From the NCBI GenBank assembly GCA_033442325.1, contig JAWQFM010000009.1:863729-927728 (forward strand): a DNA stretch of 64,000 bases, given 5' to 3'. The translations under genes and the position numbers were made by a program. This document shows, in pieces, positions 27,839-57,315 of this stretch; the stretch's first letter is position 1, and every line of letters starts with the position of its first letter. The stretch is from Salpingoeca rosetta. Lineage: Eukaryota; Protista; Choanoflagellata. The notes beneath the pieces are model-generated. The model had not been told where the DNA came from. It ran no database searches and worked only from the letters and a program-made list of their open reading frames with translations.

Positions 27839-29181
27839 CGCGATCGAGAAAGATANNNNNNNNNNNNNNNNNNNNNNNNNNNNNNNNNNNNNNNNNNNNN
27901 NNNNNNNNNNNNNNNNNNNNNNNNNNNNNNNNNNNNNNNNNNNNNNNNNNNNNNNNNNNNNNNNNNNNNNNNNNNNNNNNNNNNNNNNNNNNNNNNNNNN
28001 NNNNNNNNNNNNNNNNNNNNNNNNNNNNNNNNNNNNNNNNNNNNNNNNNNNNNNNNNNNNNNNNNNNNNNNNNNNNNNNNNNNNNNNNNNNNNNNNNNNN
28101 NNNNNNNNNNNNNNNNNNNNNNNNNNNNNNNNNNNNNNNNNNNNNNNNNNNNNNNNNNNNNNNNNNNNNNNNNNNNNNNNNNNNNNNNNNNNNNNNNNNN
28201 NNNNNNNNNNNNNNNNNNNNNNNNNNNNNNNNNNNNNNNNNNNNNNNNNNNNNNNNNNNNNNNNNNNNNNNNNNNNNNNNNNNNNNNNNNNNNNNNNNNN
28301 NNNNNNNNNNNNNNNNNNNNNNNNNNNNNNNNNNNNNNNNNNNNNNNNNNNNNNNNNNNNNNNNNNNNNNNNNNNNNNNNNNNNNNNNNNNNNNNNNNNN
28401 NNNNNNNNNNNNNNNNNNNNNNNNNNNNNNNNNNNNNNNNNNNNNNNNNNNNNNNNNNNNNNNNNNNNNNNNNNNNNNNNNNNNNNNNNNNNNNNNNNNN
28501 NNNNNNNNNNNNNNNNNNNNNNNNNNNNNNNNNNNNNNNNNNNNNNNNNNNNNNNNNNNNNNNNNNNNNNNNNNNNNNNNNNNNNNNNNNNNNNNNNNNN
28601 NNNNNNNNNNNNNNNNNNNNNNNNNNNNNNNNNNNNNNNNNNNNNNNNNNNNNNNNNNNNNNNNNNNNNNNNNNNNNNNNNNNNNNNNNNNNNNNNNNNN
28701 NNNNNNNNNNNNNNNNNNNNNNNNNNNNNNNNNNNNNNNNNNNNNNNNNNNNNNNNNNNNNNNNNNNNNNNNNNNNNNNNNNNNNNNNNNNNNNNNNATG
28801 TATGTATGTATGTATGTATGTATGCATGTATGTATGTATGTATGTATGTATGTATGTATGTATGTATGTATGTATGTGTATGTATGTATGTATGTATGTA
28901 TGTATGTATGTATGTATGTATGTATGTATGTATGTATGTATGTATGTATGTATGTATGTATGTATGTATGTATGTATGTATGTATGTATGTATGTATGTA
29001 TGTATGTATGTATGTATGTATGTGTGTATGTATGTATGTGTGTATGTGTGTATGTGACGCCCAGATGTCGACGTTGACCATCTCCGGCGACGCGTCGTTT
29101 GTTGACGTCGATCAAAAGGTGCTCCACCCCGCCCACGCATCCACCTCACGTGTCTCATCGCACATTTCGTGTGACCCTGCG

Positions 29182-34501: not shown

Positions 34502-35018
34502 CACACACACACGACACACACACACACACACATACNNNNNNNNNNNNNNNNNNNNNNNNNNNNNNNNNNNNNNNNNNNNNNNNNNNNNNNNNNNNNNNNN
34601 NNNNNNNNNNNNNNNNNNNNNNNNNNNNNNNNNNNNNNNNNNNNNNNNNNNNNNNNNNNNNNNNNNNNNNNNNNNNNNNNNNNNNNNNNNNNNNNNNNNN
34701 NNNNNNNNNNNNNNNNNNNNNNNNNNNNNNNNNNNNNNNNNNNNNNNNNNNNNNNNNNNNNNNNNNNNNNNNNNNNNNNNNNNNNNNNNNNNNNNNNNNN
34801 NNNNNNNNNNNNNNNNNNNNNNNNNNNNNNNNNNNNNNNNNNNNNNNNNNNNNNNNNNNNNNNNNNNNNNNNNNNNNNNNNNNNNNNNNNNNNNNNNNNN
34901 NNNNNNNNNNNNNNNNNNNNNNNNNNNNNNNNNNNNNNNNNNNNNNNNNNNNNNNNNNNNNNNNNNNNNNNNNNNNNNNNNNNNNNNNNNNNNNACACAC
35001 ACACACACACACGCACGC

Positions 35019-43934: not shown

Positions 43935-44862
43935 TTACTGGGTTTCGACACTGACGGTGATGGAGGCAGACAGCTTGGTGCGCAGCTCCTCGATGCGTAC
44001 TTTGTTCAGGGAACCCTGCGGCGCATGGGTTGGTTGGTGGTTCGGTGCATGGCATGAGGAAGTGGCAGTGGGACGTGACATGCAGCAGGAAGATGAAGTG
44101 GGTTATTGTGTGTAGGTAGGAATGGTCATAGTCGTGCAGGCTTGCTTGGACACGGCACACGCACGTGCACAAGAGTGCAAACGGGCACTAACGTACACGC
44201 AGGCTGGCGCACGCAGTGATGTACACACACGTGAGTATACACACACGAGCATACACACACACGTACGCAGACACACACACACACACACACACACAGACAC
44301 ACACACACAGACACACAGACACACAGACACACACACACACAGACACACAGACACACACACACACACACACACGGCAGCCCACCTTGTCTGTAAAGTCGGA
44401 AAAGGGAATCCAGAACAAGGCCATGTTGAGGAGAGGGGCACACGGGATGCAGGTAGGCAAGAAACCGGAGCTGAAGGACTTGACAAATGCCGTGCACGCG
44501 TTTGCATCCGCTGCCACGGGCTTGATGTGCACCTCCACCACGTCCAGCCACTCTGATGTTTGTGTGTAGTTCTCGATGCGAACAAAGCCGCGCGTGTCAT
44601 TGCTGATGGCCTTGGCGATGCGCACCTTGCGCGTGTTGGTGAGTCCGGACTCTGGTCGCCCTTCCTGGAAGTCTGCCACCGCGGTCTTGAGCGCCTGTAC
44701 CAGCGCATCTACGGAGCAAGAGGCGCGCCACTGCTCGCTGCCTTGCCGAATGGCCCGCACGCCAAAGCACCACTGCCCAGGCCGCAACACCGCTTGCACG
44801 GGGCCTTGCACCCGCGACATGCACGTCGGCTCGCTCGAAGGCCCTTCAGCGGTCGTGGACAT
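43935..44862 (-). CDS. Small conserved hypothetical protein, DUF1499-like C-terminus; 2 exons
   Basis: Non-repetitive ORF MSTTAEG..YTQTSEWLDVVEVHI..SFSSGFLP..WIPFSDFTDK spliced in phase 0 to GSLNKVRIEELR..*; the SD..G.N..R..LR ending recalls DUF1499. Family call is tentative. Confidence 0.65.
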
Positions 44863-45501
44863 GGCCGCCCCCTGTTGTGTGTTGGGAAGAAAGGGGGGGG
44901 GGTAATATGTGCGTGCGCGCGCGCGCGCGTGTGTGTGCGTGGAGTGGGGGAAGTGGGGGGGGGGGGGTTGTGTGTGGAGTTGCCTCTCCTTCTCGTGCTG
45001 GCTGTTGCTGCGTTGAATCTGCAATGCACGACCGACTTGTTTTCTGGACTCACCGCGCCACGCTAAAGCAACACATCCATCACCACTTGCCGCCCAATAT
45101 CCAAACACACCACACAATCAACTGCAACGACAGCTACGGCGAGCACCACACTTGATCACGGCTCCCAGTTTACTCCATTCAGTGCACTCCACCGCACTTC
45201 GAACCAGGCCTCATCATCACGTCATCAGCGACGACCACGTAACGTGCCCAAACACGCTCGAGTCGTTTTTGCAAACTCCTTCTTCACGCTGTCACGCGCG
45301 TGTAAGAATTGCCATTGACATCATCGTCAGCCAGCATCCTCGATTTTCAGCAAGCAGCCTTGCTGGCTTGTTGTTGATGATCGTGTGACGGTGTGAGTTT
45401 GATACGCTCCTTCCCCGTCCACCTCTTCCCCTTCGCTTCTTCCCCCCCCCCCAAACTCCGCCCACCACTGGCTGTTGACCCTCAGCCATTATTGGTGGAG
45501 G

Positions 45502-47894
45502 ATGGTGTCGCCACCATCGCCACCGCCTCTCGGGTCGTCCTCCAAGCGGCTCTCCCGCAGCAAGGTGCTGGGCTTGAGCAGGTTCCCACGCCACCGGCTG
45601 GTTGCAGATGTGCTAAGGCCTCGTGCGGAAGCCAGGTCGCCTTCAGCCACCAGTACCACCAGCAGCAAGCATGGCAGAAGGCGCAGAAACATGGCCGTTA
45701 ATGCACGGCCACGCAAACCATCAGCGACAGCACCACCACCACCACCAGAAGCAAACACATCCTCCTCCTCCTCCTCCTCCTCCTCCTCCTCCTCCTCCTC
45801 CTCCTCATCATCATCATCATCAACACGGACAGGCCCACCGCCACGGTCGAAGAGCGACGGCGCAAGCAGCGACAGCAGCATGCGTGGTGGAGCGCTATCT
45901 CCAAAGCGGGCACGGTCCATGACCGACATCTACACCAGCACACCCAGGCCCAACTCCACGGCTTCCGACTTCACCGCAAATGCAAGTCGTGGCGGCACTA
46001 ACATCACCACCGACATCACCACCAAGAGCAGTACAAGAGGTTCTGGTCCACGGCTGCGCTTGTTCAAGAAGCCATGGTTGAAGCAAATCATGGCCACACT
46101 CCATGCCGACATCGTCACCCGGCAGGCGGCAGACCGCCGCGGCGTGTCACTTCGACAGACGCTGGGCGCGCGATCACGCACGCGCGAGCCGCCAGCAGAA
46201 GGGACGCTGGCGGCAGAGATGGCGCGAAGCTTGGCGCAGCACCACTTCATGTTCAAGCGACAGCAACTGCGACGGCTGCAGGCCATGAAGGAAGAGCTGC
46301 AACGACAAACGAGTGCACAACACCGCTCCCCACGCGAACACAATGACCAGCAGCAAGAGAATACAACCCCACAACAACAACAACAACAACAACACCCATC
46401 AGCCATAACATCGTCATCGTCGTCGTCTTCAGCACGCGGCACTGTCGCCACGGCGCTGGATGGCGGTGAGAGTTCGCGCCACTTTGAACGGCTGCGGTCG
46501 CTGTGGATTGACTATCTCTCTGCAGAGTCGGACCAGTCCCATCTGGAGACTGCCGCGTGCGCGTGGACGTTGAGCGTGCTCCTGCAGCACTTTGATGAGA
46601 GTCGCTTTGACTTCTTTGAGATGCCACCAAGCATCGTGAACGGCGGCGTGCGCACGCGCGTGAGGAATGCCCTTGAGCGGGTGGTGACGTCTCTGGCCAA
46701 CTGGCGCGCGTCCAGGTTTGAGGAGGAGCCCTGTCTTGCGCAGGTCCTGACGCGTGAGCCGAGCGAATCAGACTGCCGTCTCCTCATCGACGCCGTCGTC
46801 ACAAACATCTGCAAGGTGAGCGTGCGTACATTTGCGTTTGTGTGGGGTTGTGCGCCAACACGTGTGGTGTTTGAGGAGGGAACTCGAACCGCAAGCTGTA
46901 ACAAACAGCACTATCGCCAAATCGACAAAGTCGCTTGCGCTCATCCTCTCCGTATCCCATTTCTTCTTTCCACCAACTTAATCCCACTCAACCACCACCA
47001 CCACCACCACCACCACCACCACCACCACCACCACCACCACCACCACAGGCGGCGGGGCTGTCGTTCCGGTGCGAGCGAAGCGTGTTCTCCGTGTACATGC
47101 CGCGCAACCGCCCCGATTACCTCTTCTACGACAAAGACAACACCCCGTGCGGCCTACTGGAGGCAAAGCGCATCGACCTCAGGCACGGCTTTGTGCAGGC
47201 GTGTGTGCAGCTGCTGTGCTTGCAGGGAATTGTGCCTGCACGCAAGTCGCGGCCGCTGTTTGCCGTTGTCTCGGACGGCTTTCGCTACATGCTGCTCGTG
47301 CTCACAGCGCAGCGGCTGTGGGTGGAGGGGCCAGCCGTGTACCGCGCAAAGACGTGGGATGCTCTGTGGCACATCTGCGGCAAGCTGCTTGCGGTGATGC
47401 AGCACAGGCTCCCGGAGGGACTGCTGACGTCACAACGTGTGTGCGGTGACCTGGATGCGCAGACCGGCACAACATCAGGCACACGCGCACACGCGAATGC
47501 CAGGAGGAAGAAAGCGGGGGATGGAAGGGGTTCATCGCCCGCAAGTGTTGGAGCGACAGCAACGGAGAGGAGCAGCCGCAGTAATCATGAGATGCCTTCA
47601 AGCAGAGGCAACGAACAGGGTGATGGTGATGATGGTGGTGATGGTGGTGGTGGTGGTGACAACGGTGACGATGGGGGTGGTGTGGGCACTGTATCTGATA
47701 CTGAGGCTCGCAGCTACTGCTTTCGGTTGTTCAAGCGAGACTTGTCACCGTGTAAGGTACAAATACAGATAGGCTTCGCTCTCGAGGCGTGTGTATGCGT
47801 GTGCGTGTGTGTGCGTATTGTGCGTGTTGTGTGTGTTTCTGCTGTTGTATCGACGACGTGTTTTCTCTGATGCATGTGATTGTCTCACCCCAGT

Positions 47895-47927
<33 letters not shown>

Positions 47928-50512
47928 ACCTGCGAACACGCCTCCATCAGTGTCAACGCGTTCAGTCGCGCTGCCCTGCCGGGAAATGTGTGACTGCGCT
48001 CTCAACCAAGTTCGCACCCACGGTACGTCGATGTACACCTGCTTGGAGCATGCGTGGTGTGTGTATGTGTGTGTATGTGTGTGTATGTGTGTGTATGTGT
48101 GTGTATGTGTGTGTATGTGTGTGTATGTGTGTGTATGTGTGTGTATGTGTGTGTATGTGTGTGTATGTGTGTGTATGTGTGTGTATGTGTGTGTATGTGT
48201 GTGTATGTGTGTGTATGTGTGTGTATGTGTGTCTGTGTGTGTGTGTGTCTGTGTGCGCGCGCTTGTGTGTGTGTGTGTGTGGGTATGTAGTGGCTTCACC
48301 TTGTCATGTCTTGATGCTCTCACCCATACTTGGGGGTTATGCCGCTGTTCTCTCTCTCTCTCTCTCTGTCTCGTGCGTACACGATACTCAACAGAGCAAA
48401 GGGGAGCCAGAGAACGAGGGCGCTGTGGAGGAGGGGAGTGCAACGCTGAACGTCGCTGGCGATACGCAGCCGCTCGTCGACACAGACCAGCCAGCCGTCA
48501 TCACCGCTCACAGTCACGGCGACCACGACACTGGTGGTGGTGATGGTGCTGAAGAACCAGCCTCTGGGCACCGGCAGCAGAGGAAGAAACCGCCCCTCAA
48601 ACGCACCAACGCGACCGTTGTGCACACGCGCACCACCCATCCTCTCCCCAAATCATCACGAATCTGGTCATCATCAGAAACAGCACCAGCACCAGGAGAA
48701 TCAAGACCGGTGCCAGCGTCGACATCAAAACAACCAGCACCATCACTGTCATCATCATCATCATCGTCGTCGTCGTCGTCGTCATCATCATCATCATCAA
48801 TGCCTGGCGGCGACAAGGTGGCGGGTCTGACGTGCCCTCGAAGCAGCTGCACAGCAGCAGCACCAAGGAGTGTCACCACGACCACTGCGACCACCACCAC
48901 CATTGCGAAGATGAAGCCGACGGTGACAATGGCGCGCGGGCGTGCTGCGCAGTACAAACGGACGAACGAGGACCTTCTGCGGCTCCTCGGCGGTGTTGGG
49001 GAAGCATTGCCGTCTCCGCCAAAGGACGTGCCCACCACACCGATCGCAGCCACGAGCAGCACCACATCCACGACCACGACCACCACTCCCGTTGTGGCGG
49101 CAGTGGACCCTTCGGCAGTAGAGGTGGATGTTGCTGTCGGTGGCGGCGGTGGAAAGACGACGACGACGGCTTCATCACAGGCGTCCTTGCACACATCATG
49201 CGATGCACCTGCGCTACCAGCAGCATGCCTCTCGTCCTGTCGACGACCACCTTCGAAACCACCGCCCCTGGTATCGTCGTCGCCATCATCAGGCTCCCCA
49301 CCACCGTTATCGCGACTGTCGAGTATGTCATCGCATGCCCCGACCAGCACGGCGCCAACGCAAACACAGCTGGCAGGCAGCGGCAATGTGCTGGCGCAGC
49401 TGCAGCCAGTGAGCGCAAGTGGCAGGGGGCAGACGAAGGAGGCCACGGCAGCAGCTGATGTGTTGGATGTGGCGGCCATCGACGCTGACGTTGGCGGAGG
49501 TGATGACGGGGATGGGGACAGGACCGGGAAGAAGAGAAAGGGCGGTGTGGCTGTGATGAAGAATCAGTCCTCCACGAGCGAGTGGTGGTGCGCTTCTCTC
49601 CAACAGCGACAACAGCACCAACAGCACCAGCAGCACCAGCAGCACCAACAGCGACAACAGCACCAACAGCACCAACAGCACCAACAGCGCCAACAGCGCC
49701 AACACCACAACTATCGCGGCACTGCCACAGCAGCCCATGTTGAAGGCCGTGATGATGGTGGCGATGATGATGATTGTGATGCTGGCGAGCGGCGGTTGTG
49801 GGATGGTGCTCGGGCGGCGCTCGACCGACAGTTGCCGCGTGGCGGGGATGGGCGGCGAAAGTGCATTCGTGGGCGCTGGCTGGCGGTGTGGGCGCCAACG
49901 GAGGACACACGCCAGCACCGATACGACCACAGCGACGGGGGCGGGCGAAGTGGTGGTGTTGGTGGTGTTGGTGGCGATGGTGGTGTTGGTGGCGATGGTG
50001 TGGTGACAGGGACGACGACGACGACGACGACGGCAACGACGACGGGTGGGAGCGGGTGGTGGTCGGCGCTGATGCGTGCAGTTCGGCAGGATGGCACGTT
50101 GTCGCGCCACAACGCCAGCGTTGCCCAGCTTGCCGACAGCATCGCAGCGGCGCGGGGGCGGGGGTGGCTGGAGCTGCTTGAGCACCTGCAAGAGGCGTTG
50201 GTCCTTGTGCAGGCGGAGTGCGACTCGTTGGAGTGGAGCGATGCTGGCGCGTGTGTGCTCTCTGTGTACTGCGACACAGACGATTGCGTGGCTGTTGGCA
50301 GGCGACTGCGCCGCGTGCTCCAGTCCTTGCACAGCCTCGCACATGGCCGTGATGCTGAGGACGACGACGACGACAACAACAACAGCAACAACTGTGATGA
50401 ACGTGGTGGTGGTGGTGGTGACGCTGTGCCTGTTCCCAACATTGTCTTTGTGGCCAGACACCCGCCACACATCTTTCTATCTATTCCTGTTCCCGTAACC
50501 ACCAGCAGCTAA
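45502..50512 (+). CDS. Large protein with central PD-(D/E)XK restriction-endonuclease-like domain and putative C-terminal eIF4E/BLES03-like domain; exons 45502-46815, 47049-47756, 48395-50512
   Basis: Two phase-0 GT-AG introns join three long ORFs; SESDCRLLIDAVV..K|AAGLSFRCE..RPDYLF..GLLEAK..FVQACVQL..LFAVVSDGFRY; C-terminal GRWLAVW..WWSALMRAV..VLSVYCD..VAVGRRLRRVL..IVFVARH. Confidence 0.7.
48057..48232 (+). repeat. Compound (GTGTGTAT/GTGTGTGTAT)n repeat in intron 2 of the REase-like gene
   Basis: Directly visible. Confidence 0.92.
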
Positions 50513-50868
50513 GCCTTTGCCGTTGCTGTCTTGCCTTGCTTGCTTGCTGTCTTCCTTGACTTACTTGTGACACTTGTATTTATTCTTTCTATTGTCCATT
50601 GCATGCGTGTGCTTCCCTGCCTGCGCGCGTGTGCGTGTGCGTGTGCGTGTGCGTGTACGCGCCAGTCGAGTACATAAGATCACACGGGAACCTCCCAACA
50701 GAGATTGCAGGTGGATGATGCCCGCCTGTCACTTCAACACAATCCACCATTATTTTGTCTTAACCTTTCTTGCTTACTTGCTTGTGTATGTCTGTTTTCA
50801 TTCCTCTCCCACAACGACAACTTCGAAAGAGAGCAAACACGCACGCACACATCGACATGGATGGTTGG

Positions 50869-57052: not shown

Positions 57053-57315
57053 NNNNNNNNNNNNNNNNNNNNNNNNNNNNNNNNNNNNNNNNNNNNNNNN
57101 NNNNNNNNNNNNNNNNNNNNNNNNNNNNNNNNNNNNNNNNNNNNNNNNNNNNACACACATATACACACATACACGCACACATACATATATACTCGCGCTG
57201 ATTGGTGACGTATATTGAAACTCTTTTGTCTTTCTCACGGTTTTCTATAACAGTACAGATCGCACACGTGTCATTACCTAAATATATATATTTGTATATA
57301 TATCACATGTAGACC

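Follow-up and report, generated by a model that had tools for sequence, protein, structure and literature searches.

The window analysed in this study is a 64,000-nucleotide (nt) stretch of the Salpingoeca rosetta genome (contig JAWQFM010000009.1). Positions 45502-50512 hold a spliced plus-strand gene encoding a protein of 1,403 amino acids (aa), in which two ordered parts, here called island 1 (a PD-(D/E)XK nuclease domain) and island 2 (a C-terminal domain), are embedded in low-complexity segments, with an entropy below 3 bits in 41% of 20-aa windows. An initial annotation, made from the DNA sequence alone, had described the protein as mostly low-complexity, and the conserved ordered parts do lie where it had put them. 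The features of the gene are collected in Table 1.

RNA evidence came from two raw RNA-seq runs (X15 and X16) and two contig sets (X4 and X5), mapped to 45000-48056. The first mate lies on the minus strand in all X15 and most X16 reads, placing the transcript on the plus strand. The start codon, ATG 45502, has an A at -3 and a G at +4 and is preceded by an in-frame stop (TGA) at 45400; the sole upstream ATG in the leader, at 45377, opens a reading frame of only 3 codons. Translation ends at a TAA at 50510-50512. Between these positions the spliced product comprises 4 coding exons separated by 3 phase-0 introns. RNA depth is zero at 46836-47039 inside intron 1, and in X4 and X5 contigs, which stem from two studies, 46816 is joined to 47059 with 9 letters in between. 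Within the nuclease domain, this intron falls between helix alpha-1 and strand beta-1. The joint across intron 2 (47754>47949, cut +2) is present in raw run X15 as well as in the X4 and X5 contigs. Sequences ending at 48022, the end of the micro-exon, continue with the letters of 48395 onward in X16 (7 reads), X4 and X5, and the X4 and X5 contigs have overhangs past 48022 of 255 letters matching that sequence.

Since the introns are absent from both X4 and X5, these contig sets are RNA-derived. Of the words sampled from 45300-50700, a fraction of 0.81-0.83 is present in their intron-less runs, and removal of the 3 introns from this region would allow 0.85 at most. This indirectly supports transcription of a last exon in which no other large intron is spliced out. 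No read shows a direct 47756>48395 junction, i.e., skipping of the micro-exon, at what is a low depth. The proposal of a single spliced gene with both islands on one transcript is thus borne out by the read and contig joins, as well as by orthologs that have both islands in one protein. Of the 2 phase-0 introns originally proposed, the one at 46816-47048 proved exact in RNA and contigs, but the one at 47757-48394 is in fact 2 introns around a micro-exon. Both sides of the anticipated 47756/48395 junction are therefore on one RNA, joined via 47951-48022 and not directly, and with the micro-exon the protein is longer than the approximately 1,380 aa first estimated.

Table 1. Coordinates of the gene and of the encoded domains and residues in the 64,000-nt window, with the data that define them.
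Feature	Position	Strand	Content	Evidence
5' leader (start approximate)	45100..45501	+		X16 RNA depth from the 45102-45203 bin
Coding exon 1, aa 1-438	45502..46815	+	low-complexity N-terminal extension; PWLKQIMATL (aa 190-199); helical front of the nuclease, including E422	RNA coverage, intron-less contigs, translation
Nuclease N-terminal helical part, aa 322-438	46465..46815	+		family alignment, ortholog model, pairwise alignment
E422	46765-46767	+	exon 1 helix	
Intron 1, 233 nt, GT..AG, phase 0	46816..47048	+		RNA, contigs, splice sites
Coding exon 2, aa 439-674	47049..47756	+	PD-(D/E)XK core; low-complexity linker; first Cys of the Cys4 motif	RNA, translation, homology to P0001 and P0002
Nuclease core, aa 439-565	47049..47429	+		near-invariant alignment columns, model, fold matches
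E447	47073-47075	+	nuclease core	
D461	47115-47117	+	nuclease core	
E476	47160-47162	+	nuclease core	
K478	47166-47168	+	nuclease core	
Q488	47196-47198	+	nuclease core	
Intron 2, 194 nt, GT..AG, phase 0	47757..47950	+		X15 reads, X4 and X5 contigs
Micro-exon, 72 nt, phase 0, 24 codons, aa 675-698	47951..48022	+		reads and contigs
Intron 3, 372 nt, GT..AG, phase 0	48023..48394	+		read and contig overhangs
Last coding exon, aa 699-1403 and stop	48395..50512	+	long low-complexity linker with basic clusters, then island 2	unbroken 706-codon frame; first 255 nt joined to the micro-exon
Island 2, aa 1163-1400	49787..50500	+		TARA homology, 9-row alignment, model, fold searches

Could 45502-47756 and 48395-50512 be two separate genes? 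The contigs are broken at low-complexity repeats, so that no single record spans the locus, which leaves some room for this. However, reads and contigs link exon 2 via the micro-exon to the sequence that begins at 48395, the reading frame runs on without a break, and both islands are in one transcript or gene model in orthologs, so that we consider two genes extremely unlikely. Two minus-strand open reading frames (ORFs) over the last exon, at 48873-50468 (531 codons) and 49328-50470 (380 codons), were rejected as low-complexity by-products because the RNA, read over part of this exon, is on the plus strand; they arise from low-complexity, GC-rich codon repeats. Intron 3 contains a 176-nt (TGTGTGTA)n microsatellite (48057-48232), and in the region at large CA/TG repeats are frequent in both introns and spacers. 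At the other end of the gene, the protein starts with a 185-residue Ser/Arg-rich extension (aa 1-185, 45502-46060) ahead of a short W..LL motif that in orthologs is located 10-30 residues from the start. Residues 1-35 are Arg/Ser-rich and basic, the first acidic side chain being that of D36, and could be a targeting peptide or mere low complexity.

Island 1 contains a complete PD-(D/E)XK catalytic set (E422, E447, D461, E476-x-K478, and Q488). In a 35-row alignment of the family, described below, the E of the R-x-E strand, the D of R-x-D-Y, the E-A-K, and the Q of the next helix are near-invariant, and the columns for D461, E476, and K478 are conserved in at least 90% of the rows. For structural analysis, we used the orthologous domain of Choanoeca flexa (P0002:95-350) as a stand-in for the S. 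rosetta domain. S. rosetta residues 322-433 align to residues 95-206 of P0002 (E 4e-13), and exon 2 is 44% identical to it (E 6e-33), so that by these two pairwise alignments the S. rosetta nuclease sequence is collinear with the modelled segment. The AlphaFold model of the C. flexa domain has a predicted local distance difference test (pLDDT) score of 93 and a predicted template modelling score of 0.87. It runs from a helix through 3 strands to a second helix and then further strands, which is the PD-(D/E)XK core fold. The catalytic columns are on beta-1, beta-2, beta-3, and the following helix, those for D461, E476, and K478 mapping to model strands 134-144 and 150-156.

Foldseek searches with the ortholog model returned PD-(D/E)XK nucleases with a probability of 1.0, the matches including mitoribosome chains, DrdV, BpuSI, AdnAB, lambda exonuclease, MGME1, and Cas4. 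Among predicted structures in the ESM Atlas, the closest match was an oomycete cluster (template modelling (TM) scores of 0.67/0.81; root-mean-square deviation (rmsd) of 2.0 Å over 186 residues), and other neighbours were an oomycete cluster with a Crinkler header, cyanobacterial proteins of approximately 208 aa, and an HSDR_N cluster. HSDR_N is also among the neighbours in a language-model search with island 1. In Pfam, this model gives weak matches in 6 of 35 family members (best E 1.6e-4), with the top member scoring 19.9 bits against a gathering cut-off of 25.1, and a comparison of the family profile with HsdR 3h1t aligns the D, EAK, and Q (E 0.44). The three exon pieces themselves have no match in Pfam or NCBIfam, and searches of PDB sequences with both islands gave low-complexity noise only. 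Collectively, these alignments and models support the assignment of island 1 as a PD-(D/E)XK nuclease domain of the HsdR-N/Crinkler-REase (restriction endonuclease) type, as the initial annotation had suggested. The nuclease fold and its chemistry are of an already known kind.

By Z-score, the best solved structures were 3j7y chain 5 (Z 13.9, 207 residues, rmsd 6.2 Å) and 7a5f chain s3 (12.9, 210, 7.5 Å), followed by BpuSI (11.8, 146, 2.9 Å), DrdV (10.7, 137, 2.9 Å), and the HsdR fragment 3h1t (9.2, 128, 4.2 Å). We take 3j7y chain 5 to be the mitoribosomal protein mL37 and 7a5f chain s to be mL65. With mitoribosome chains as the top solved-structure matches, the domain might be a repurposed, non-enzymatic endonuclease fold that has a structural or RNA-binding role like mL37 and mL65, maybe in mitochondria. 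mL37 and mL65 have been described in a review as animal-specific repurposed endonucleases (PMC8998825), and the basic first 35 residues without acidic side chains would also fit. Set against this, the catalytic residues of island 1 are near-invariant from choanoflagellates to animals, which argues for retained chemistry. Moreover, the rmsd values to mL37 and mL65 of 6-7.5 Å come with 6-9% sequence identity, the oomycete and cyanobacterial REase clusters are much closer structurally, and none of the 13 Pfam families matched by the 35 members at E<=10 is mitoribosomal. In addition, mL37 and mL65 are absent from the profile search of PDB sequences. A non-enzymatic scaffold is in our view unlikely. 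It is also conceivable that the family is a surviving relative, still catalytically intact, of the endonuclease that was repurposed by animals as mL37/mL65; the pair is the best solved-structure match with the N-terminal helical extension included. If this were true, the family would show the form and role of the ancestor before its use as a ribosomal scaffold, but we regard such a relationship as quite improbable.

After the nuclease core and a low-complexity linker follows a Cys4 motif, C-x-C-x6-C-x4-C (CKCQRVQSRCPAGKC), at aa 673-687. It starts at 47751 in exon 2 and spans the junction with the micro-exon, which provides 3 of the 4 cysteines. The motif is kept in a relative from TARA Oceans, in Choanoeca and Monosiga, and in three metagenomic relatives (homologous rows L001, L003, L004, L005, P0002, P0004, and P0005), and is degenerate in Hartaetosiga. 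Pfam zinc-finger models do not match it in full-length orthologs. The motif is probably a zinc knuckle. In 6 choanoflagellate-type loci (S. rosetta 47756/47757, L001 627/628, and L003-L006), an intron follows the SPC[KR] codon, always at the same position. The sequence of the micro-exon is part of the last exon in relatives L001, L003, L004, and L005 and, among the loci read, the extra intron 3 is so far present only in the S. rosetta genome. Metagenome gene callers have read through the SPC[KR] intron, producing false C-termini that end in SPCRVS (P0003, P0005, P0007, P0008, and P0009).

The TARA relative provides the link to the second domain. A word search with exon 2 returned a single protein, P0001, with 63% identity. 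On its scaffold (L001), the same SPCK codon closes the exon, and the sequence after the intron at this boundary reads CQRVKKRCPDGHC, the S. rosetta counterpart being CQRVQSRCPAGKC. A short linker then leads to a homologue of island 2 (27% identity, E 6e-13), so that the elements are in the S. rosetta order. A CA-rich repeat (L001 640-740) lies in the intron that follows this SPCK codon. Pfam has no match to the TARA relative.

Island 2 is broken by two low-complexity inserts (approximately aa 1203-1250 and 1350-1376), and in a 9-row alignment the other sequences are 16-29% identical to that of S. rosetta. Its outline consists of an R-G-R-W strand, a helix, N-x-R-x-x-P, a helix, a V-Y-C-D strand, a helix, and terminal strands, with partly conserved aromatics (RGRW and WW). 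The AlphaFold model, built from this shallow alignment, is of moderate confidence (mean pLDDT of 63, with 70-89 in the core and both inserts disordered). It has 5 strands in the order beta-alpha-beta-alpha-beta-alpha-beta-beta, i.e., with single strands between the helices.

From the motif order, read by eye, the initial annotation had assigned island 2 to the eIF4E/BLES03 (DUF1917) fold and proposed that a nuclease tethered to a cap- or nucleic-acid-binding domain acts as an RNA/DNA surveillance effector. The partly conserved aromatics are in line with this, and with a moderate model and a shallow alignment a false negative could occur. However, Pfam searches with 9 island 2 family members gave no DUF1917 or eIF4E match even at E<=10, PDB sequences had no match by phmmer or profile, and language-model searches no usable one. 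Foldseek with the island 2 model found nothing at E<=1e-3, TM scores in the Atlas did not exceed 0.36, which is background level, and the island 2 fold-search lists contain no chain of eIF4E or BLES03. The eIF4E sheet is a curved, eight-stranded antiparallel one, and the five-strand model does not have it. Word searches with the 907-aa ORF over the last exon (region 203-907) and with island 2 yielded nothing, the former being swamped by low-complexity candidates. Thus, of the two islands, fold searches placed only the first (via the ortholog model) where it had been expected; the eIF4E/BLES03 assignment, and with it the notion of a nuclease on a cap-binding fold, is unsupported, and we consider a surveillance effector of this type very unlikely. 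The description that fits island 2 best is that of an orphan two-layer alpha/beta domain restricted to the orthologs of choanoflagellates. It diverges far faster than the nuclease, for which identities are 31-50% among choanoflagellate-type sequences (67% between two Choanoeca-type sequences).

To delineate the family, a profile of island 1 was searched against 1.84 billion protein cluster representatives (E<=1e-3), yielding 36 proteins. Choanoflagellate members are from C. flexa, Monosiga brevicollis (XP_001743589.1), Salpingoeca kvevrii, and Hartaetosiga gracilis, with one family match per named species; animal members are from the oysters Saccostrea and Crassostrea, the brachiopod Lingula, and the annelid Owenia. 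P0018, from a foraminifer transcriptome (EukProt Nonionella stella), has a long branch and a weak HSDR_N match (E 7.4e-4) and may be a contaminant or a sign that the family is more widely distributed. A scan of JGI metagenomes with the island 1 alignment gave pattern matches but no true relative. No Pfam model covers the family, all members are labelled uncharacterised, and no member accession was found in the literature searched. The choanoflagellate and animal members have an N-terminal W-x-x-[FL]-L-x-x-L motif in common (read by eye; PWLKQIMATL in S. rosetta). The choanoflagellate members carry the Cys motif and an island-2-like C-terminal domain, either directly or downstream of truncated gene calls. 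The animal members that were inspected end just past the nuclease domain, which is at their very C-terminus.

In a maximum-likelihood tree of the core, with one fragment row left out, a single branch (support 85/92) separates animal-type from choanoflagellate-like rows, the backbone being otherwise poorly resolved. The animal-type rows (P0011-P0033) form at least 5 well-supported subgroups, which suggests several paralogs among these sequences. The conserved intron position, together with the split of the tree into choanoflagellate-like and animal-type rows, suggests that the gene descended vertically.

These data bear on another possibility, namely that we are dealing with a Crinkler-type toxin or a selfish-element nuclease involved in conflicts between organisms or inside the genome, with the fast-evolving tail as a built-in inhibitor or immunity-like module. 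The nearest predicted-structure clusters are indeed oomycete, one of them having the Crinkler header in 30% of its members, and the evolution of island 2 is much more rapid than that of the nuclease. Yet exon 1 contains neither this header nor any other Pfam domain, and there is no Crinkler match in the whole-protein scans of members (the per-member scan covered domain segments only). The single match per named choanoflagellate species and the indications of vertical descent do not favour a conflict element either, and the locus showed neither repeats nor transposon features. We consider this possibility distinctly unlikely. LRLFKKP (aa 185-191) was considered as a Crinkler LxLFLAK motif and rejected, being not conserved in orthologs and without a Crinkler profile match.

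Our preferred explanation, which we consider reasonably probable, is that the locus is one expressed gene of four coding exons for a largely disordered protein with an intact PD-(D/E)XK domain that is most likely a metal-dependent DNA endonuclease. Like its structural kin, the protein would cut nucleic acid, probably DNA, in a metal-dependent manner, perhaps in the nucleus, as KKRK-type basic clusters may indicate. The tail of the choanoflagellate proteins, made up of disordered, variable linkers, the Cys4 motif, and a fast-evolving alpha/beta domain of approximately 140 residues without recognisable relatives, could supply targeting or regulatory modules in the form of the Cys4 motif and the C-terminal domain.

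Several points weigh against this explanation. In this family, catalytic activity is predicted from alignments and a model, and that model is of an ortholog 30-44% identical to S. rosetta, not of the spliced S. rosetta sequence itself. Ranked by Z, the solved structures at the top are mL37 and mL65, which are catalytically dead, the N-terminus would also be compatible with a mitochondrial location, and the S. rosetta exon pieces, like most members, are below the Pfam threshold for HSDR_N. Finally, continuity of the last exon past approximately 48650 is something that we infer.

Outside the gene, reads of run X16 at 45000-45203 with the first mate on the plus strand derive from a minus-strand transcript that adjoins or overlaps the 5' leader. 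This transcript, at 44188-45203, suggests a divergent neighbouring gene; a 309-aa minus-strand ORF at 44188-45117 has no Pfam match. Assembly gaps are present as runs of N at 27856-28797 (942 nt), 34536-34994 (459 nt), and 57053-57152 (100 nt), and account for odd GC values in the composition profile.

The interest of this very small family, shared by choanoflagellates and spiralian animals, is that it has a full restriction-enzyme-type active site and that its nearest structural kin are toxin domains of pathogen Crinklers, bacterial HsdR nucleases, and dead endonuclease folds of the mitoribosome. By that kinship, it sits where a defence or toxin nuclease entered ordinary eukaryotic biology. 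No living group is closer to animals than the choanoflagellates, and since S. rosetta is genetically tractable, the function of the gene is directly testable.

Comparing the S. rosetta gene to known systems, the closest predicted-structure neighbours of the nuclease are the REase domains of oomycete Crinklers (CRN/CR), with TM scores of 0.67 by query and 0.51-0.81 by target and an rmsd of 2.0-2.9 Å over 186-196 residues, a stretch that takes in most of the N-terminal helical extension. The PD-(D/E)XK chemistry of CRN proteins is thought to target nuclear DNA (PMC5289972). Crinklers are defined by an N-terminal ubiquitin-like (Ubl) header with an LxLFLAK-type motif (PMC12957317). The likeness is limited to the REase-type domain (in an oomycete cluster of which 30% of the members have PF20147), as the S. 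rosetta gene lacks the Ubl/LxLFLAK header (PF20147 searched in exon 1, E<=10). Unlike an expanded effector family, it is conserved, intron-bearing, and single in each named choanoflagellate, and the modules behind its nuclease are the Cys4 motif and an orphan domain, not kinases or NTPases.

HsdR (HSDR_N, PF04313; 3H1T and 2W00) and type IIG enzymes (BpuSI 3S1S and DrdV 7LO5) have the same motif layout as the S. rosetta domain, with E..R on a helix, E on beta-1, D on beta-2, ExK on beta-3, and Q on the next helix; the similarity to the HsdR nuclease domain thus extends from structure to catalytic motifs. In contrast to HsdR, all matches of the family are under the Pfam gathering score, and there is no helicase, methylase, or specificity partner in the S. 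rosetta pieces (a helicase or methylase is also lacking in the full-length members scanned). The S. rosetta protein is moreover eukaryotic, intron-split, and extended by N-terminal helices. The match with mL37 and mL65 does cover these helices, and neither that pair (PMC8998825) nor the S. rosetta family extends beyond the animal side of the tree, but the family has kept its catalytic residues.

The closest parallels are orthologs. M. brevicollis XP_001743589.1 (A9UT20) and the C. flexa transcript EP00730_P017925 carry both islands, meeting the expectation that the fusion would be found in other choanoflagellates, and have the elements in the same order as S. rosetta: the W..LL motif, the helical and PD-(D/E)XK domain, SPC[RV]C...RC..G.C, and the island-2-like domain. 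With 739-751 aa they are about half as long as the S. rosetta protein because their disordered linkers are much shorter. The first impression that no protein of this architecture had been described therefore stands as far as naming and characterisation in the literature searched are concerned, but the architecture is not unique to S. rosetta. New are the family as such (unmodelled, tiny, and choanozoan), the presence of a Cys4 motif and an orphan domain in its architecture, and the place that it takes structurally, between Crinkler REases, HsdR, and mL37/mL65.

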